DNA of 63,575 nucleotides, the filler included, from Platydemus manokwari (taxonomy: Eukaryota), in NCBI GenBank assembly GCA_037951405.1. It is 6 parts of 6 records of this genome, joined end to end, with 100 filler letters (N's around TTAATTAATTAA, not from the genome) between each part and the next. Parts side by side here need not be neighbours in the genome. Positions count along the whole stretch, not along the records: positions 10,028 to 19,286 come from JBBMOY011276317.1; 5 more parts are not named here. One strand, 5' to 3'. This document shows positions 665-19,286 of this stretch, in pieces. The translations under genes were made by a program, and so were the position numbers. The notes under the pieces are model-generated. The model was given only the letters and a program-made list of their open reading frames with translations, was not told the DNA's origin and made no database searches. Numbering within the stretch: position 1 is the stretch's first letter; each line of letters starts with the position of its first letter.

Positions 665-1490
665 CTACAAATCATTCCATGATGGTGCTTTCCGAAATGA
701 TTTTTTCAGTGAATCGTTTTTCTTTTTCAATAAACGCGATTCATTGCTTTTTGTGAGTCTATAATTATCAAATAACAACAAATAATAAGCAATCAGGAAT
801 ATTATCACATTTTCTCCCATCTATCCTTAGTTTCTTGAGAGGTTTCTGGAGTTTTACATGCTTCAATACATTCTCTGACAGCATGTCGAATTCTATCCAT
901 ACAATCGGCTTGATTAAGCAATTGCTGTCGGGTTTTTTCTGATGAAACGATGAAATGATTATCTTTAGTCACTCGATGTGATTCCTATTGTAAATTATTT
1001 ATTTGCCAATATTCTATCAAAATGGTTTACTCGTTTTAAAAATGTTTCCTTAACATTTTCTGGAATCCATTTTACTGATGATACATGGAATTTTACTTGA
1101 ACTTTTGTATTGACTAAATCATTTTAATCAACATACAATTTAGTTGTTCTGGTATTACTTTTATTAACATGCTGTCCACCTGGTTTACCAGATCTCAAAT
1201 ATTTTATTTCCAAATCACCTTAAAATCAATTATAATAATTAAATATAAAATCATATCTAATACAAACTGATAGGTATTTCACCAAAAGATTCCTGTGAAT
1301 GAATCTAATCTATTAACTGAAAACCTATTTACACTTTCATTACCTCTAAATTAGTTTCTGATTTTTTGTTAATCTGATAATATTCATCGACTGTTTTCGA
1401 TAAGTCACTTTTATAACATAAATATCGAATACTATTTGAGTTATTATTAGAAACAAAATTTCCAAGTCGCTTTAATACATTTCCAAGCAT
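665..1490 (-). CDS. ICT1: Mitochondrial peptidyl-tRNA hydrolase ICT1/MRPL58 (ArfB-like), 6 exons
   Basis: Manual splicing through five GT-AG introns of ~39-50 nt (e.g. 1305-1343, 1219-1267) gives MLGNVLKRLGNF...IHSQESFGEIPISDLEIKYLRSGKPGGQHVNKINTKVQVKFHVSSVKWIPENVK...FIVSSEKTRQQLLNQADCMDRIR...RLLKKKNDSLKKSFRKAPSWNDL*. GGQ motif at 1172-1180, basic C-terminal tail, N-terminal transit-like peptide. Missed by the ORF track. Confidence 0.92.
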
Positions 1491-1932
1491 CTCAAAACGT
1501 TTAAAATAAGTTTAAATAAGAACAATATTTAAAAGAGAGAAGTAATATATGAGATTTTAAACAAAAATTTCTTGAATATCACACTAACATTAATATTTTA
1601 TTTAATAATTTATCTTTAAAATATACATCAAATTCTTTTGAAACTTCACTAATTGTAATTTTTTCAAAATATTTTTTATCAAGTCTGTAAGATTAATATA
1701 ATTGGATAAACTGTAATAATTTAATTTCAATTTCTCACGTTTTCACTATAAATATATAGTTCTTTAAAATTTCAAAACGAATAATGACGTCTTATGTAAC
1801 ATTAGTTGTTTATTTAATCATATTACCGAAATATTCAAAATTAAATAATTTTATTTCATACAAGATTGTAAATATGATTATATCTTATTTTATTAAAGTT
1901 ATTTCGATTTTAACTTATTTCTGAAATTTTAG

Positions 1933-2420
1933 ATGAATGAAGAACTTGTGCAACTGCAGAAAACATATCAAAAAGCATTTGAAACATCCATTGAATCCAT
2001 CGATAAAGATTTTCTAAGAAAAATGCAAGCCGATCAATATCGATGTTCTGTAAAATGCTGTGAAAATTTAGGCTATAGTGGTACTGAAGTTCAAAATTGC
2101 CTGACAAGTTGCAGTCAACCTATTGTGAATGCACAGTCTTTTATTGAAAATGAAATAAATTCATTTCAAGCATGTTTCACCGATTAAAAAGAAACACCTA
2201 TTTTATCATCTTATTAATTTAGAATCGGTTGCAACGATGTATGTTAGATTGTGCTGATAGTCAGAAGGACAAATTGCCATCAAAACCTAGTGATAGAGAA
2301 TTAAAAGTCGCTGAAGCAGAAGTTAATCGCTGTGCAAAGAGTTGTGTGGATTCTCATATCGATAATCATTTACCTTCTTTGATGCAAAGAATTAGATCAA
2401 AGTTAAAGGAAAATTTGTAG
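1933..2420 (+). CDS. FAM136A: FAM136A (DUF842) twin-CX3C mitochondrial protein, 2 exons (1933-2169, 2223-2420)
   Basis: RKMQADQYRCSVKCCE...VQNCLTSC...EINSFQ|NRLQRCMLDC.D...NRCAKSCVDSH matches the FAM136A Cys pattern. In-frame joining needs a 53-nt GC-AG intron at 2170-2222. Confidence 0.93.
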
Positions 2421-3838
2421 TTAATCTAGTAAATAAAATAAATAGGATCAGTCTCTTGAAATAAATAATTTTTAATTGACTTTATTTGTGTTTATAAAAA
2501 TGTAATATAGATTATGTAATAATGATTTAAAATAATCTAAAATACAAAAATGTTTCATTATTTAAATTTAAAAAACGATAAGGAAACATTTAAATTTCAC
2601 TTCACTACTTGGAATGTACACCTGGTTGATGTTTAGTAGCAGATTTTCGTTTAACAAAAAAGTGCCGTTGTTAATCGAGGTTATTAAAACAACCAATATG
2701 CTCACTCAAGATAAGTGATTTTTTCTCAAATAATAATTAGTTGAATTAATAAAACCTATATTTTTTTTGTTTTTTGAGAATTTAAAAGTTGTAATCGGCA
2801 TTCAGTTTACTGAAAGGTTTTTTGATATTTATTGGACTGGATTATAAGTAATAAGTATTGTTCCACTATATACTTCTATAATTTGTTTTCTGAATCGTTT
2901 ACTTGTCTTAGTCGCCCACTGCATATATATATCAGAACAAATCTGGGTGTATGAACCATTTTCTAATCTCGAAATTCAAGCCAACCACTGGAATCTCAAA
3001 CCAAGTTAAAAAATTAAATGAAGGTGAAACTCTTAAAATCAAAACTCAAAATAGGGTTTCGTAAAATAGGCATTCAAAATTATTGTCAAAGAACACTTAT
3101 TCGAAGACAAGAGGTCATTGCTGTACATTAATTAACGATCTCCAGAATAAATTAAAATCTAAATCGAAATTGTTCTGAATTTTATTGTCTTTAGTTTATT
3201 ATCTTTATCATGTTTATATTATTATGTTTATTTAGTTCATGTGTTAATCTATCTTATTATTATAAAAAGTTATATTAATAATATTTAGTTTCAACATCTA
3301 CTGAGATCATTTAATATACTCAAAAATAAACTCAATCATCTTAAAAACTTTAAACCAATCAAATATCTAGCATTTATTTTGAGTAAAAACAAGGAAATAC
3401 TTATTTAAGCCATGAATAATAGTCACCATCAAATCATAATAAATGAATGACCTGCAAGCTAGAAATAATAAGAAATTTTAAAATAAAGGATCAATTAATA
3501 TTTTCTAATTCGCGCAATGATTCAATCCAATAAGCACCTTACTAAACTACTTTATTATCGATTTTTCATCAGATGTTGTCATGGAATTTTGATTTCAAAA
3601 GGGAATCATCCTCTTAAATATGTTAAATTATATCAAAATGAAGTAATAGTTCCAACAATGTTAATTGAAAAATGGATTCATCCACACTCATAAATAAAAT
3701 AGGCATTACAAATTTGTCGTTTGATAACTTGCAAACGTAACGGGCTATTATTCTAATCTGAATCCTTTTCAATCTAAGTTTACACTGAGATCTTATTTTA
3801 TTTATTTGAAAGGAAAATAAACATTGCGGCTATCGTAT

Positions 3839-4344
3839 TGTTAGGATCCGAACTCGCATTGAGTCACATAACGGCAAATATCATGTTACGCCCACAAACA
3901 TAATCACACAAATAAAAATCCTAAAAATAAACTAGCAATTAAAAATAGTAATTTATAATTACTATAATAGAACAGAAACTAAAAATCGAATTTAATAATT
4001 GCAAATAAAAGAACAGAAAACAAAAATAGGATTTTAAAATTCCAGAAATAGAAAAATCGTAATTGGTTAAAATCATAACAAAAATAGTATATAAAAATCT
4101 AGAGATTAATTGCCATTAAATTAATCGTTATATAAAATATTTTTATTTTAAATAGATGTTATAATAAATCATTGCATAATAATATGTATTACTCGCCCTT
4201 ATTTGAGACAGAAGATTATAATATAAGGTTTCATAGAGTGTACCTTAAGGGGTTGATCAGACCTCATAGAGACTGATCAAGTCGGCATTGATCTACAATA
4301 AAATATAAAATACAGAGACTGGTTAATCAAGCAGCCTCAAAACA
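3839..4344 (+). mobile_element. Probable solo LTR / LTR fragment (Gypsy-type)
   Basis: Begins TGTTAGGATCCG and ends ...CCTCAAAACA. The 5' part recurs inverted at ~26560-26783. The 3' part (ccttaaggggttgatcagacctcatagagactgatcaagtc) matches the end of the Gypsy LTR at 33935-34042. No clear TSD. Confidence 0.55.
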
Positions 4345-10027: not shown

Positions 10028-10800
10028 TTGATCAATTATTATAATCGAATATTCTTGAAATCATGTTTAATTAAGATTAAATAAAATAATTTCAGAGATA
10101 TCAACAAAAACTAATATTTGAATAATAAAATTTTTCAAAGAAATTCAATTAGGATATAAGACTAATCTTATTTTTTTAGTAATAAATGAGAAAAATAATA
10201 ACCTGACGAATTTTTGTAGTTAATCAGATTTCAGACTGTTATTTCAATGTTGCATAATTCTATGGAGTATTTTGTTTATCGATGTTTTAATGCCATTTCT
10301 GACATAACTGATATTTAGTCTAAGTTTCAAATTTGTTATTGAAGGAATTTGTTAAGAAAAAATCTTTTAATCTTACAACAGAATATAACAGTTTAAAAGA
10401 TTTATTAAAAAGTTTAATTCTGTTAAACAATTTAATTTTTATATTACGAACTAAAATAATTAAATCCATCATTAGACTCTTGTTTTATTATTTCAAAATT
10501 AGAATCAATGAATTTATTTTAAATTACGTTTGTAATTTTCTGTTTCAGATTAATTTTTTTCGACAGTTTAACGATTTCATTAATTAAATTTTGTAATTAT
10601 ATTCAGTCTGTTAATTTTTTAAAAGTTTTTTTTGCTAACTGATATATTTATAAACAAATTCTTATTATCTAAATTTTAATTGTAACATCTTTTTATGAGC
10701 AATTAATTTTTTTGGTTGATGGATATTGATGTGATTTGGAAACGGGTAAGTATATTTATGATATTTTAATTATCTTTTTCATTTAATGGAATTAATTAGT

Positions 10801-11812
10801 CAATAATAAAAGTTCCTATTAAACTACTGAATAGGGGTTTTGATTGTTATATTAATGCTGCATTTCAGTCGATACTTATTACTTATGATGATGAATTTGA
10901 TAAAATATTCCAATCCAGGTTGATGAGAAAAAGACCTGCTATTAAATTACTTTATGAATGTTTAACGGCTGCCAAAGATCATAAATGTTTTTCATTGTCT
11001 GATTATCTCACATCGAATGTCGATATAACATGTACATAAAAAAATGATGAATTCAATCGTTTATTGTTTATACAATTATTGATAGATTTCTCTCAACGTT
11101 TGCAATTAAGCAGACAAGAGGATTGTCATGAGTTTATGTCTGGTTTTTTGGATCGATTATTTAATGAAGTAGAGGAGTGTAAGATATTTATTAAGGGAAT
11201 AAATCCGATCAAAAATGCATATGAGATTTCAATAAAAAATATGGTTGTTTGTGATTCTTGTCAAGCAATTAGTGATGGACTGCCACCAGTCAATACTAGA
11301 ATGTTTCTCATTGTAGAGCCAAAACGGGATCTCGAAGAAAGCATTGAAACATCTTTGAATGGTCGAATGGAGACGTACCATTGTGGGAATTGTAAAAAAA
11401 CTCATTCAGCTCACTGTATATCTCATTTTGTTGGATTGTCGGCTTATTTGTTTATTTGTGTGAAAAGGTAAAACAAAAAACTATAAAAACGGGTTCTCTA
11501 ATAATATTGTTTTTATCCAGATTTTACTATTTGAATAATAAAATCCATAGTAAAAATCGTCTAAAAATGAAGGTCTATGAATATCTAAATGTGCCATTTG
11601 GTTCGGATGCTACTTGTTATTATATTTATGAATTAATATCTTTGGTCATGCATGTCGGTGGGGTCAACAATGGGCATTATTTTAATTATACCAAAATCAA
11701 TAATAAATGGTTTATGATTGACGATACTTCTGTTTCGAGGATCAGTTGGAATAAAATAACGAGTTATGGCTTTAATAGCAACTATATTCACACGTTTAGA
11801 CGCATAAAATAA
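10801..11812 (+). CDS. Ubiquitin-specific protease (peptidase C19), catalytic domain only; 5' end unresolved
   Basis: Cys box LLNRGFDCYINAAFQ, QEDCHEF box, CDSC/CGNC finger zinc ligands, His box YELISLVMHVGGVNNGHY...WFMIDD. In-frame GT-AG introns 11032-11085 and 11468-11520. The nearest upstream ATG exon (~10719-10745) is out of phase. Confidence 0.85.
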
Positions 11813-14800
11813 TAAATTTGCAATTTTTTAAAAATTCATTGTCTCAGTTAAACAAAAATCATTTATTCATTTTGTTATTTTTTTAAAAAAAAACAACAAT
11901 TGAAATATATCAATTAAGAGATTAAAGTTGAAATCAAAATAAAATTTGTCCAATTTTCATTTATTCAAAATAATTGTTACTATTTATATCAACCAATTAA
12001 ATTCATTGTTATTCTCAATTTTTTTATTTTCTTGGTGTTTTAATTATTCAATGGAAAATTAATGATAAGAATTTTGATTATTGCAAATATACTTATTAAT
12101 ATAATATATATGTACAAATATTGTAATCATCAAATAAATATTTGGATTCGAGTTTTATGGTGTGATAGATACAAATTCATAATATAAATATAAAAATTGT
12201 TATAAAAATGCTATAAAAACAATGTGTATTACTTTTACGTAATTCGTTAGAGGGAAAATAGTGATGTTGACCAAATTTTAATACGCAAAAATAATTAAAA
12301 TCGTTAAATTCATTGCTTATTATCACCAGATTTTTTAGTCTAACAAGGATTGTTGATCTATCTTGAACTGTTCTTATAAATCGTAAAATAGTGTTTTATA
12401 AATTACACAATACATTTTATAGAAATCGAATAGTAGCCAGTGTAAGTAGTTACTAATTCATAAATGACGATTTGAAAACGAACTGAAAAGTCATGACACC
12501 AAATTATGTATTTAAATACACTTATATAAGCAAAATACAATTTTATATAAAAACTGAATTAAATCTTCTCACACCCAGTACAATCGCATTTCGTAAAGTA
12601 ATATTAAAAATTGGAAAAAAAATAAATTCAAGATATTTTAGATGATATTTAACTAAATAAATATTAGTAATATGGAATATTAATTCTCTTTTAATGTAAT
12701 ATTAACACAAGACAGTCGTGATATTAATTTCTTTGAAAAAAATTGAATTGTATTTACTTACAAAAATGTTAATAGCTACATAGATTCTATCAATTTTTAT
12801 CAATTAAATATTACATCTATCATAATTTTTTATATTTTGATAAGTGCGATTATATTATCATTAAAAATTAAAATAATCAGATTCTCTACCTAAACCATAT
12901 TTGCTTATGTGAAAAATTAAATCATAAGTGATGGGATTTATGCCATAAAGCATTTTCTACATTTTTTATTAGATAGACAATAAATTTCATAATCAAACCA
13001 AAATATGGCTCAATATAATAATAAAAAAATTTCCTATTATTTCTCAATTTCGTGAATTTTCCAGCTATTTAAAATTAGTGCTTGTCATTTCTGAATACAC
13101 AAAATGAATTTAACAGTCTATTATTTAAACTCAGATATCTCATCCGAATTTTATTGAAATCAATGTTGAATTCTCAAATAATATATTTTTTCAATTATTT
13201 ATTGCGTTTATTATTTCAAAAAGCTATTGTAAATATTTATCAATCGATTGCAGTTAGTCTTCAATTTTATCAAGTGCAAATTCAGTTTTCATAATTTCAG
13301 CTTAGAGAAAAACATAATGACTGCGAAAATTTCATTATATGAAATACGATGACAAATAGTCACTCTCTTCCTATTTTCTTCGATTAAAAATAGTAATAAC
13401 CTGCCAAAGATTGACGATAAATATTTAACAACTGAAATTCTGAAGACTTCGAACAATTTAAGTTGTTATTCAAAATTTTAATAATTAAAAATTATTTACT
13501 TAAAATGAACTCCATAAATTCATGTCGGGTTGCTATGGTAAATTGTCGTCATGTACTTTTAGCTCGTATATTTAAACCATTCCAACTTAAATGTTTCACA
13601 AAATACTGAATTGAAAGCAAAGAATTCTAAACGACAAGTTTTAATAACTGACTTTTGCTTTATTGTTTTCTGATATGAATAAAAATTCCGTGGTAAAATC
13701 AGTAAGAAATTTTCTATAAATATGAGCCACTGATTAAATAAATCGGAAAATATATTTCCAAAACAAATCCAATGGAAATTATGTTTGTTTTATGAGTTGA
13801 CAGAAATCAGATATTGAGATTGATATGCTCAAATCGTCTGCATTAAATAATCATTTCTATGGTTCATTTATTGTCAAGAATTAGTTAGCAGACGGTAAAG
13901 AAAAACCGTATTCTTTAATTTAGTTTATTTTTATCAGTGATTTTTACTAAAGAAAAACATTAATTTCTATCATCCCATTTATGGGGTTTTTTATTTCTGG
14001 AGAAATTTGAAAAATAATCTAATATTTGAGTTTGTAAATTTAATTATAACGATCGATTCTGTAGATTTTATCAGCTGATATCGAGGAATATTTCAAATAA
14101 TTTTTCAGTCGAAAAGCAACATCTGTTTCACGAATTTCATTTCAAAGTTTTTATGTGTGTAATGTCTAAAATAACCATTCGAAATTCAGTTTATGATGGA
14201 CCAAATATGGTTTTCTAAATGGTTTCCGAGAATTTCATGTCTCGTCTAACTTATTTATGGTACATTAATTAAATTAAAAAAAACTTCATTTCAATACTAA
14301 TAATAATTATAATGAATGATTAATATCTGTTTGCGGTTATTCTCTATGATTTTCATTCTCGTAATTGAAATGAAATCTTTTTGATAAACTCAGAAATAGC
14401 TTATGATTGTCTCGAGTAAATTATTCGAAAAACAAATCTCTTCAAACAGAAAACTTATCTCAAAAAATTCAGTTCTGTGCAGATCAATGATTTTTTAATT
14501 CCGGTTAATCAAGTTTGTAATCGAAAGTGACAGTGAAAAGAACAATTAATATTTGTAGATTCTAATTAAATTGAGCTTTTTAATTTTAGTTTAAGTATTT
14601 ATAATTTGCTTTTGATTAAACAAATCTCTCATACAAGCTTGTATAATGAATTTTGTTTTGTTTTTCGGGAAAAATTCTACTAGCAGAAAATTTCTTTTGA
14701 CATACGAAAATCATTGGTAGAAACTAGAGTGGATTTTGTGTGTATTGATTAAATTTTAGAGATTTTTTTGGAAAAAAAAACAAAAAAACATAACATATCA

Positions 14801-17761
14801 TCTAATATGAGTTGTTATTCAGATTTATGATATTATTTTTCGATAATTTGAAAACCATTGCGCATAGCCTCGAGAAAAGCAGTCACATCGCGCACACACT
14901 CACTCACTTGAGATCGATTATTTTGTTTCAAATATATAAGAATTGTATTTATTTTATGTACTCTCAGATTCATTGAACAGAAGAAAAAAATCATTGAAAG
15001 TCATCTGAGTACAATTATGGTTTAGGAATGATTATCAAATGTTGGTTTGTTGAAAGTTTAAAAATCAATGCCATCAGCCAATTATATGGAAAACACATCA
15101 TAGCTAATTGAATTCAAAACTTTGATTGTAAAATTGTATAAATTTTTGTTATTTTGGAAAAATTTTTTGGTTATTTTTCTTTTTTGTTATAGTTTTTTTT
15201 ATTTTATTAGGTAATTTTTTATCGAAAAAAATTATTATTCTTTAATGACCTTGAAATCCTTACAATTAAAATCCTAAAAGTTTCCAATTTGAAATACAAA
15301 TAAATTAAATTATAAATGGTGAAATAATTTGACAAAAGTTGGAAATAATTCTCGAATATTTGCAATCAAATGAGTTTGATGATGAATTATTGTTTACGAT
15401 TTGGTTATTGTTCGAATAATTGAAAAGTGAGATTTCATTGAAAAATTTAAACAAATTTGTGTTGTTTTAAGTTTATTTTCTAATAAACATTTTCTTTCAA
15501 ATGTATTTATTGATTATAAAAACAATAAACATTTAATTTGCCTGGATAATTTGTATTTTTATGAATTAAATAAAATATTTGTTTATGAAGTAATAAGTGA
15601 TAACTTAAAAGTATATTTTATTATTTTATGTATTTAAAGAAATCCTAAGAACTCGAGCATATATACAAGAATTAAATTTATGTTAGATATGATACGCAAT
15701 CATTACTGTTCTGTAAATGAAAACAGATCAACAAAGGAAAGCTTTTATTAGTGGATTTTTAATATGAGTTATAAGAAACGAAAAATTTCGTTAGATTAAT
15801 CAAATTCAGTGGCAATGTATACCAAACATCGACGAAAGTGTTGGTTTGGAATTTTTGGTTGTAAGTAAATAACATGTAAAAATATAAATTAATTAATATA
15901 AAATGTGAAATGTTTATTCGAGATATTTTCCGTAAAGCAAACAATAATGAAAGAATATACACGTATATTTTAGTTGCATTAGTTTCGTCGTTATCATTAG
16001 AGTTGTAATCCTATTATTTCAGTGCATTTATAAACTTTTTTCGCTGAAACTCCCGTTTGATAAATATTCTAATTAGTAGATTTTAGTTTCTTGATTATTA
16101 TAATTATTTACATGTTTATATATTCTCATCATTAATCTGTAATGATTATACAGGCACCGTGAGAATCGAAAATCTAACCAAATTAAAAATGTATTTTTCG
16201 ACGTATTGAGTAATAAACCAAGAGTTTCTATTAATAAGTTCTATCTTTTAATTGTTGTATTTTTTTCTGATATCATTGAACTAATTGGGAATATTTTTTT
16301 GAAGAAAGATCGAGTAAAACAATCGATAATAATTAAGATCTGAAAGAACAAAAAGCCCTTTGATTATGTGAAGTAATGGATTATGTGATAATGGGAAACA
16401 GTAATGGGGAATCATTATTAACTAGGAATAAGATTTACCACGAATATTCAGTTATAATCAACTTTAAATTTAGAAAAATGATTTTCATTTGGATTCGGAA
16501 TATTGATCAAATCAAACATAAAGAAAAAGAATAATTAAATTTGGTGGAGATTACAAGCACATGTATTATAAAAGTTGGTATTTGATGTAATGATAGTTAA
16601 TATTATCATCTATAAGAATAAAAATGAATTCTGTCAAATCTGAACAGCTCAATATGATAACCTAAATTAAAACTTAATAAAAACCGTATGAATCCCCATA
16701 AAAATTGATATTTTAATGTGGATATTAGTTATTTTTTAAAATGAATATAAACTGGTGTAAAATAAAACATATCTCCTTCATTTTTATTCGTTTAGATATC
16801 GATTAATTGGATTGCAACAAAATATTATGATAAATATAAATCTAAAACAAAAGGATTTAACCATTGAAGATAAACAGTAAATGTTAAAATAAATTGATGA
16901 AGATTATTGTTGTTTTCAAAGCTTTATTTAAACGAAATTTATTAAGCTGCGTAAATAATCCTGTCAAATCTAGAGATTCTATTTTGAAATAAAATTTGAA
17001 TATTAAAACAGAAAATAAAATCACATTTATTCAGTGGTTATGAAATTGACACTGTTTTGTATGCTTTATTGCAAAAAATGCTTTGAAATTCGCACAATAC
17101 TTTGACAGTCATGTATTTAAAGTATTAAATGACTGGCTTAATTGTTTTCTTTTAAGACTTATATGATATTGTCCAAAACAATGATTGGAGAATCAAATAC
17201 CGCGAATGAAAGGTTTGACTTTGTTTTTAAAGAATTATCTAAATCAAAGTCGAAGAAATATGAAAATGGAGATGTTTATAAATTTTGTTGAAATTGTATT
17301 TTTCTAAAAATGTTCATATAAGCTGGTATATAATATAGAAATACAGAATTGAAATAAAATGAAGAGATAATGTTTATTTGATTAAAACAAATAATTTAGA
17401 ACACAGAATCTATTTAAAAGGCATAGCCTAGTGCGTACGCACTTTGGCATGCTAAAAATAAAAATGTAAAATTAAAGATTACCAACATACTTATTGTACA
17501 ATGAATTTTTAAATTTAAACCAATTCTTTGTATAATTTTATATTATATTTTCGACTATTTATACTAGTTGATAGTATGTATTTTATAATTATAATTAGTT
17601 ATAATTTTTATTTTTAATTAATTATCATATTGAGCAACGATTATCCATCATACTCGTAGCTCAATCTGTAATCCATTACGATTTGGACTTTCATTGGATT
17701 GCTTGATGAATTTGTCCTAAAACTAGTATATAAACGGATAGCTATTTTCTAGTTTCTTATA

Positions 17762-17818
17762 GTCCTATCTGTCTCTAGCCGAGGCACTGATGAGGCCCAC
17801 GGTAGGCCGAAATAGGAC
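17762..17818 (+). ncRNA. Type III hammerhead ribozyme (copy 1), predicted cleavage after AUC at C17769
   Basis: gtcctaTC | stem I tgtctc[tagcc]gaggca | CTGATGA | stem II ggcc[cacggta]ggcc | GAAA | taggac. All core nucleotides and all three helices are present. Confidence 0.92.
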
Positions 17819-17884
17819 AATATCCATATCATAAAACCACTACCATCATCTTTGGAGCTGTTTTTTTGAAGGCTTCGGGAGATT

Positions 17885-17942
17885 GTCCTATATATCTCTG
17901 AACCGAGATACTGATGAAGCCTACGGAGGGCTGAAATAGGAC
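17885..17942 (+). ncRNA. Type III hammerhead ribozyme (copy 2), predicted cleavage after AUA at A17892
   Basis: gtcctaTA | stem I tatctc[tgaacc]gagata | CTGATGA | stem II agcc[tacggag]ggct | GAAA | taggac. Compensatory base-pair changes relative to copy 1. Confidence 0.9.
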
Positions 17943-18099
17943 TAATTTTCGCCAAAAAGTAATTTATTTATTTATTTTAAATATTTTGACCAATTAAAAA
18001 AATAGAATGTATGGAATATCTAAAGATAAGCCGTATGGTAAATTTTTAAAATCTCGCAGCTATACTCTTCAGAGATTAATATGTTAGGAGCAAAATTAA

Positions 18100-19286
18100 T
18101 ATCTTTTAAAATAGACAAGTCAAAGAAACCTAGTTACTTTAAACATTTTAACATAGAATAGTTACCTGTTTGTCATCATTAGAATACAAAGTCTTGAATG
18201 CCTCTAACGATTATTCAAAGAATCCTTTAAAGAATTTTAAAAAATAGAGAAGAGATGAATATTTCACCACCAAAAGGACTTTTTAAAAAGCCGCACTGAA
18301 TGATTCCATTTTGACTACGATGACTATTATGAATAAATGAAATTTCGAATCTATCGACCTTACGAATGATTTTAACGATCGATAATTAAAATTAATTAAA
18401 TACCAGTAACAAAACTGTCTTATTTACATCAAATGAGACGTCACATCTGAGTGCACATATGGAGAAAAAATATTAAAAGTTATGAATGCGAAATTGATCA
18501 GATATGTATATATTTTTGACAGAAAAATCCTCGATAGTTAATACGTGAAATGTCTAATTTCGTTCAGAAAATTAGGCTTTCTCCAGATCTGGCCAATGTG
18601 CTATCACAATTCAAATCCCAGTTAGGTCTTGAGGCAAGACAATTAAAATGAGTTTCAGTTCAACACTGACTTGAATATTGATTCTACCTTAGTTATTGAG
18701 AAATATATTTTTGGCATTTTCCAGAATTAAAAAAACTTAGCATGCATATATATTATGGAAATTATTTTAAAATATTGGGTTTATATGTGATACTAAATGT
18801 GATAATATACAAATATTTATGTAAATAATTAATTATATTGTCGTTATAATATCATTNNNNNNNNNNTTGTCTAAATTAATTCTAGTTATTTGGACGTTTT
18901 TTATTATTAAATTTATTATTTCAGCTATATTACTTTTTCTTTATTTCGTTATAAGTAGTAATAAATTTTTTATTTCTAAATTTACTATTAATATGACGAA
19001 ATCTAAATATTTAACTGTTGTCTAAAACTTTGAATCATCTGGAATTCTGTTTTTAATGTCATATAATTCAATAATTCCAGCATGAAACAATCAAAGATTT
19101 ACATTAAACATGTTCTCTTATCAAATATAATGGAAGTTAAATTTTGCAATGAAGGCTATGGAGAATATTTCAGTTCTTTTCAAAAGGTTTCCGATTGCTC
19201 ATACCCCTACACCAAGATCGAAATATCATATATGTTAATGCAGGAAGAAAAGCGTCTTTTCCGACATTGACAATGTAATGTTTTTC
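18100..19286 (+). mobile_element. Highly degenerate non-LTR (LINE-like) reverse transcriptase remnant
   Basis: Fragments such as IVTCLSSLEYKVL and QFKSQLGLEARQ loosely resemble early RT motifs; many stops. Confidence 0.3.

Follow-up and report, generated by a model that had tools for sequence, protein, structure and literature searches.

Can two small ribozymes that lie close together in eukaryotic DNA release the RNA between them, and is their arrangement peculiar to one locus or the property of a family? This question is raised by positions 17759–17945 of a 63,575-nucleotide (nt) stretch of DNA from Platydemus manokwari (assembly GCA_037951405.1), called here the window, and specifically of the 9.3-kb piece at 10028–19286 that comes from record JBBMOY011276317.1. 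An initial annotation described two complete type III hammerheads at this site, with predicted cuts at 17769 and 17892, and proposed that they form an interlocked pair. The computational analysis described below indicates that the locus is probably, although with considerable room for error, a miniature retrozyme-like repeat able to release a 123-nt RNA, possibly in circularised form. In the retrozyme model, hammerhead repeats are processed to circular RNAs (PMC4918200, PMC7229834).

Two hammerheads and the unit between them

We searched the piece with a generic type III descriptor that specifies helices of at least 4, 3 and 4 base pairs (bp), the motifs CUGANGA and GAAA, and U-H. On the plus strand, precisely two matches are found, which correspond to hammerheads 1 and 2 as initially annotated (Table 1). 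No match occurs on the minus strand of the piece or in 300 first-order Markov simulations of it, and a covariance model built from both hammerheads detects no third or relic copy above noise in 10028–19286. Both motifs carry the conserved core (C3–A9 as CUGAUGA, G12–A14, A15.1–U16.1 and an H17 that is not G) and have type III topology, wherein helices I and II are closed by loops and helix III is open. The minimum free energy (MFE) structure of hammerhead 2 is the hammerhead fold itself, and the hammerhead fold of hammerhead 1 (−18.9 kcal/mol) lies 2.5 kcal/mol above an MFE of −21.4 kcal/mol. Helix II of hammerhead 2 opens with A10.1–U11.1, where G-C is the usual pair. Loop I retains CC and loop II retains GG in both ribozymes, just as the annotation had stated. 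Judged from these sequence features, hammerheads 1 and 2 look cleavage-competent.

Table 1 Features of the hammerhead locus and of the surrounding piece
Feature	Positions	Strand	Details
Hammerhead 1, type III	17762–17818	+	Predicted cut after C17769, triplet AUC
Hammerhead 1 helix III	17762–17768 with 17812–17818	+	7 bp including A15.1–U16.1
Hammerhead 1 helix I	17770–17775 with 17781–17786	+	6 bp, 5-nt loop UAGCC
Hammerhead 1 core CUGAUGA	17787–17793	+	
Hammerhead 1 helix II	17794–17797 with 17805–17808	+	4 bp, 7-nt loop CACGGUA
Hammerhead 1 GAAA	17809–17812	+	
Hammerhead 2, type III	17885–17942	+	Predicted cut after A17892, triplet AUA
Hammerhead 2 helix III		+	7 bp including A15.1–U16.1
Hammerhead 2 helix I	17893–17898 with 17905–17910	+	6 bp, 6-nt loop UGAACC
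Hammerhead 2 core CUGAUGA	17911–17917	+	
Hammerhead 2 helix II	17918–17921 with 17929–17932	+	4 bp, 7-nt loop UACGGAG
Hammerhead 2 GAAA	17933–17936	+	
Unit between predicted cut sites	17770–17892	+	123 nt; hammerhead 1 body, 3′ arm, spacer, hammerhead 2 5′ arm
3′ arm, extended helix III of unit	17813–17825	+	Pairs with 17878–17890 at 12/13
5′ arm, extended helix III of unit	17878–17891	+	Ends at U16.1 of hammerhead 2
Spacer hairpin GGAGCU...AGGCUUC	17854–17876	+	Around seven-T run 17861–17867
High-copy repeat block holding the hammerhead pair	~17513–17950	+	Summed contig depth 1190–4250; right edge sharp near 17950
Separate upstream high-copy block	17342–17455		Depth 1240–2760 in X1; GC-rich hairpin 17421–17452 at end
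USP-type deubiquitinase gene, Pfam UCH family	~10700–11812	+	Cys-box and His-box exons, three short GT-AG introns

The differences between the two ribozymes indicate that both folds have been maintained. Hammerheads 1 and 2 are 82% identical over 62 columns, and the 57-nt motif shows 10 substitutions and one loop indel between them (17.5% divergence). The 10 substitutions leave all 12 core bases and all 17 pairs (34 paired positions) intact and never make H17 a G, an outcome with P about 7e-4 when 10 random substitutions are simulated with the same transition bias. The compensatory changes reported by the initial annotation are real. Helix I pair 1.2–2.2 and helix II pair 10.1–11.1 both change from G-C to A-U through double compensatory substitutions, and helix I pair 1.3–2.3 changes from U-G to U-A. 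Because 10 of 57 positions differ and none of the differences is damaging, the hammerheads appear to have diverged under selection for the fold rather than by neutral decay after local duplication. Taken as sequence evidence, this pattern argues against decaying twins and in favour of a two-hammerhead arrangement that was either selected in a master lineage or put together from two functional variants.

The direct repeat is confined to 17760–17820 and 17883–17944 (approximately 60 nt each) with a period of 123–124 nt. The duplication is limited to the hammerhead domain, and the annotation had likewise rejected a simple tandem duplication. The unit between the two predicted cut sites has a GC content of 45.5%, compared with 24.7% for the piece, and circular folding pairs 63% of its bases. 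Its spacer bears at most a weak resemblance to 17634–17740, where the alignment score is reached by 6 of 500 shuffles. A relic unit at 17634–17740 was also considered and is not relied on, since a single-copy control window scores equally well.

These features suggest a route by which the locus could operate. The 3′ end of the repeat carries the two direct type III hammerheads around a spacer of 63–66 nt, and a plus-strand transcript would fold both ribozymes and be cut after C17769 and A17892. Double cleavage would free the 123-nt RNA with a 5′-OH and a 2′,3′-cyclic phosphate, which are the ends produced by established hammerhead chemistry. The 13-position helix III would juxtapose these ends, and an RtcB-type ligase or the reverse reaction of the hammerhead could then close a 123-nt circle. 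Copies might spread by reverse transcription with an enzyme borrowed from a retroelement, or by amplification at the DNA level; the borrowed-enzyme route is the best analogy for multiplication of the family. This retrozyme-like reading is supported by the GC island, the single polarity of the ribozymes, their intact motifs and their high copy number.

The initial annotation had also noted that the arms of helix III pair better crosswise than within each hammerhead, with 12 of 13 pairs for the inner arms and 8 of 8 for the outer arms (17760–17767 with 17937–17944). The counts are correct, and their statistical weight is modest. Beyond the 7-bp core, the inner extension forms 6 of 7 pairs (P about 0.025 for random 7-mers in the AT-rich piece), and the outer extension adds two A-T pairs (P about 0.17). 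At the eighth helix III pair there is crosswise covariation (17884:17819 is U-A and 17761:17943 is A-U), and at this position each hammerhead's own arms are mismatched. The covariation is genuine and suggestive, but thin as support for an 'interlocked' design. Better crossed pairing is in any case expected, because in a repeated or circular element the remainder of the unit closes the open helix III. Release of 17770–17892 by double cleavage, with ends held by the 13-position helix, is a part of the original proposal that agrees with the sequence, whereas a special interlocking device is unsupported.

The same covariation also speaks for a different origin of the locus, wherein a tiny hammerhead circle (17770–17892) was inserted at the cleavage site of another hammerhead (17760–17769 plus 17893–17944) by RNA-level ligation and then copied into DNA, or wherein the segment is an intron-like unit whose flanks rejoin after excision. 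In such a scheme the two hammerheads would resemble functional variants rather than decayed twins, as they seem to, and the flanks, once joined (17769 to 17893), form a predicted hammerhead whose helix III has 9 bp. However, the improvement that joining brings to the outer arms amounts to the two A-T pairs noted above, and the annotated idea of an intron-like unit with rejoining flanks is not supported. We regard an origin by insertion or intron-like excision as improbable, also in light of the distribution of the repeat.

A dispersed repeat family

Copies of the locus were analysed in the contigs of sequencing run X1, the sole public run that matches this DNA (none of the matches comes from an RNA run), by using 17000–18700 as the reference and a likeness of at least 80%. 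A total of 1025 contigs align to this region and most are 80–95% alike, and the family is thus heterogeneous. Summed contig depth is 1190–4250 across 17513–17968, compared with roughly 12.8 in the single-copy flank (17969–18700) and 10–26 upstream of 17285. The locus belongs to a dispersed repeat family that numbers roughly 100 or more copies; no second copy was found within the 9.3-kb piece.

The two-hammerhead layout belongs to this family. At least four other contigs (records 4–7) span hammerhead 1, the spacer and hammerhead 2 at approximately 82–85% identity, and one of them represents a different locus because the pair lies inside a 1468-nt contig of single-copy depth. Furthermore, 16 contigs share the consensus ...TTTTAGTCCTATC followed by TGTCTC... 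across the first cut site, which corresponds to the 5′ arm of hammerhead 1 and then helix I. Since it is shared by so many contigs, the hammerhead 1 junction is a feature of the family and not a local accident. Among the 16 best-supported family variants within 17759–17945, none hits a core position.

These observations are at odds with the annotated picture of a unique circle inserted into another hammerhead, as both the layout and the hammerhead 1 junction recur in many contigs and any insertion event would be ancestral to the family rather than specific to this locus. The 'empty' loci predicted by that picture, with the flanks joined, would appear as a joint that skips exactly 123 or 124 nt, and no such joint was found among the listed X1 joints. 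Some joints do jump between the hammerheads with skips of 104–136 nt, and these may represent single-hammerhead copies.

Members of the family also differ from the window copy in other respects. Most copies have G at 17918, which gives the usual G10.1, and most lack the seven-T run of the spacer, where the family sequence is ...GCTATCGTTCTTGAAGG.... The internal length between 17678 and 17779 varies among copies, as judged from contig joints. At 17687–17695, approximately 35 family contigs continue into sequence that has no counterpart here (median 52–126 nt), including consensus fragments such as ...CGTACTCCAACGGGAT... and ...CTCCGACGGGATTTATCCTGACGGCAATAA. The window copy seems to be an internally deleted member because these contigs carry the extra sequence. 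A hairpin, TTGAGC...GCTCAA at 17629–17666, lies in the bin of highest copy depth (4254) and is joined to the hammerhead block in several contigs that skip 36–41 nt of the window copy.

Alternatively, the hammerheads might serve as the 3′-end processing module of a non-autonomous element of approximately 440 nt, similar to a short interspersed nuclear element or of another kind, with the 123-nt piece as a by-product. Consistent with this, contigs link the upstream part at 17584–17687 to the hammerhead part (for example, three contigs carry a joint from 17678 to 17720), and the family ends sharply just past hammerhead 2, near 17950. However, a single hammerhead would suffice for trimming, neither internal promoter boxes nor a tRNA-like head is confirmed, and the extended helix III of the 123-nt piece would be left without a role. 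Such a processing module seems to us an improbable account of the locus.

A DNA-level origin is somewhat more plausible, albeit still unlikely. Here the repeat would be a satellite fragment or a transposon passenger with hammerhead relics, there would be no RNA circle and the window copy would be inert. The likeness of 80–95% among most family contigs would fit an old or heterogeneous family, and the window copy carries changes that are atypical of the family. The locus also lies beside other repeats (17342–17455) in apparently non-coding DNA, and no clear target-site duplication was found. Relics would not, however, be expected to retain intact cores and all 34 paired positions at 17.5% divergence, given the probability of about 7e-4 calculated above, or to keep a GC island within AT-rich DNA. 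A miniature retrozyme-like repeat is the reading we favour.

Ribozyme models, retroelement hallmarks and surrounding DNA

Several results weigh against this retrozyme-like reading. With the Rfam Hammerhead_3 model (RF00008), hammerhead 1 scores 19.2 bits, below the gathering score of 48.5 (model positions 5–50 align to 17766–17814), and hammerhead 2 gives no match at E values up to 10 with a 301-nt query. The check that the initial annotation had suggested thus returned a sub-threshold hit for one ribozyme and nothing for the other. We attribute the low score to the training of the model on plant and viroid sequences, yet it is still a failure to reach formal membership. The fold of the 123-nt unit is only mildly better than that of shuffled sequences (z-score −1.72). 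The window copy is slightly atypical in its seven-T run and its A10.1–U11.1 pair and may be a decayed member, and the architecture of copies and the boundaries of the element are known from contig tables alone. Hallmarks of retroelements are likewise missing. The best match to a 12-nt tRNA-Met primer binding site has 4–5 mismatches, and 17285–17990 contains no stretch of at least 8 purines that could constitute a polypurine tract. No long terminal repeat (LTR) of 300–400 bp surrounds the hammerheads, where the direct repeat is approximately 60 nt. A search for target-site duplications returned short AT-rich matches alone and no clear duplication; the sequence ATTTTC, present at 17744 and 17945, also occurs in other copies and therefore belongs to the element. 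Finally, no reverse transcriptase gene was detected near the locus by Pfam analysis of ten neighbouring open reading frames (ORFs).

Other searches for ribozymes gave little beyond the pair itself. Rfam identifies no ribozyme over the whole piece at E values up to 1, and neither a minus-strand hammerhead nor any other Rfam ribozyme was found at the locus. Matches of the 301-nt query to ARRPOF, snoPyro_CD and MIR9481 were dismissed as noise, with scores far below gathering. A pattern that fits both hammerheads has no match in public viral contigs or in bacterial and archaeal genomes, and one match, L001, in metagenomes. L001 (882–940 on the minus strand of contig Ga0163161_10082017) is a GC-rich type III hammerhead between two coding regions, whose helix III sequence and rare AUC triplet are identical to those of hammerhead 1. 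The DNA around it is dense in coding sequence and has a bacterial or phage-like appearance, and L001 is probably unrelated to the family of the hammerhead pair.

The DNA around the locus is apparently non-coding. None of the ten neighbouring ORFs matches Pfam, and a spurious 68-amino-acid minus-strand ORF that covers the hammerhead element has no match in a word-indexed protein database. The only recognisable gene in 10028–19286 is the deubiquitinase gene of the ubiquitin-specific protease (USP) type, whose exons are separated by GT-AG introns of approximately 54–100 nt. These short introns, together with the GC content of 24.7%, mark the host as an AT-rich, intron-containing eukaryote. The gene is very divergent. 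Its exon ORF has no match in the word-indexed protein database, and an exhaustive search of 1.8 billion representatives gives 30–47% identity to the best relatives, which are USP domains from vertebrates and metagenomes; the top scores belong to vertebrate models with many tandem USP17/18-like domains.

Since depth drops to 44 at 17456–17512, the separate high-copy block upstream of the hammerhead repeat probably represents another repeat. It ends with an imperfect palindrome around GTGCGTACGCAC (17421–17452) that is followed by CTAA and has a DNA fold z-score of −2.6, and the block could mark where a further transposon ends, perhaps in the manner of a Helitron 3′ end. An assembly gap, a run of 10 N, lies at 18857–18866 within the piece.

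Comparison with known systems

Hammerhead viroids and satellite RNAs (Avsunviroidae, sTRSV and sLTSV) mostly carry ribozymes in both polarities, measure 220–450 nt and are not encoded by genomes. The element resembles them in its type III hammerheads, in the availability of loops I and II for tertiary contact and in a helix III whose two strands are linked through the remainder of the molecule. These agents replicate via circular RNA, and a circle is predicted here as well. Unlike in most viroid-like RNAs, no minus-strand ribozyme was found here, and the sequence is chromosomal and repeated. The two hammerheads share with Rfam RF00008 the same core and three-helix topology, but their cleavage triplets are AUC and AUA rather than the usual GUC. 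Among natural hammerheads, AUC has been reported to be essentially missing and AUA to be rare (PMC1636495).

Plant LTR retrozymes have LTRs of 300–400 bp, a tRNA-Met primer site, a polypurine tract, 4-bp duplications, circles of 600–1000 nt and a GC content above 55% (Cervera, Urbina and de la Pena 2016, PMC4918200; PMC7229834). As in these elements, a non-coding segment lies between two direct repeats that contain type III hammerheads of a single polarity, the copies of the family are numerous and heterogeneous, and the predicted circular RNA runs from cut site to cut site. Unlike in plant LTR retrozymes, the repeated part is an approximately 60-nt ribozyme, the unit is 123 nt with 45% GC, and we found no tRNA-Met primer site, polypurine tract or clear 4-bp target duplication. 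The surrounding DNA, with approximately 24% GC and introns of 54–100 nt, also differs from that of flowering-plant hosts.

Metazoan non-LTR retrozymes and hammerhead satellites, known from newt, Schistosoma, cave cricket, coral, mussel and axolotl, carry type I hammerheads in units of 150–450 bp, are found in monomeric, dimeric and multimeric form, and give rise to small circular RNAs by processing (PMC7229834, PMC7761336). Their helix III is often weak, and a dimer is then needed for cleavage (PMC7229834, PMC7761336). Repeat-associated hammerheads of eukaryotes are overwhelmingly type I (Perreault et al., PMC3088659), and type III elements in insects have been mentioned as unpublished work (De la Pena et al., PMC7761336). 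The element resembles the metazoan group in being short, low in GC and high in copy number, and in having no LTR, primer site or polypurine tract; its short, low-GC, multi-copy units are seen in arrays of up to 1.5 units. It differs in its type III hammerheads with a stable 7-bp helix III and in a unit of 123 nt.

If the retrozyme-like reading is true, the family would set a lower minimum size for genomic RNAs that process themselves and are possibly circular. A high-copy family that combines type III hammerheads, a 123-nt unit and the absence of LTRs would blur the split between plant and animal retrozymes, and it would bear on the proposal that horizontal transfer brought type III hammerheads into plant retrozymes (PMC7761336). 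The compensatory differences between the two copies provide a good natural test case for the sequence tolerance of hammerheads, the rare AUC and AUA triplets included. A bolder interpretation, which we consider quite unlikely, is that the family constitutes a third kind of retrozyme, with type III hammerheads and without LTRs, in a non-plant AT-rich eukaryote, with a self-cleaving 123-nt circle smaller than the retrozyme units (150 bp upward) or viroids (220 nt upward) of the cited literature and a master copy that arose by RNA-level ligation of one circle variant into the cleavage site of another. The element probably works like a retrozyme, yet it matches the defining features of neither retrozyme class described so far: it shares ribozyme type and direct-repeat layout with the plant elements, and small size, low GC and high copy number with the metazoan ones.

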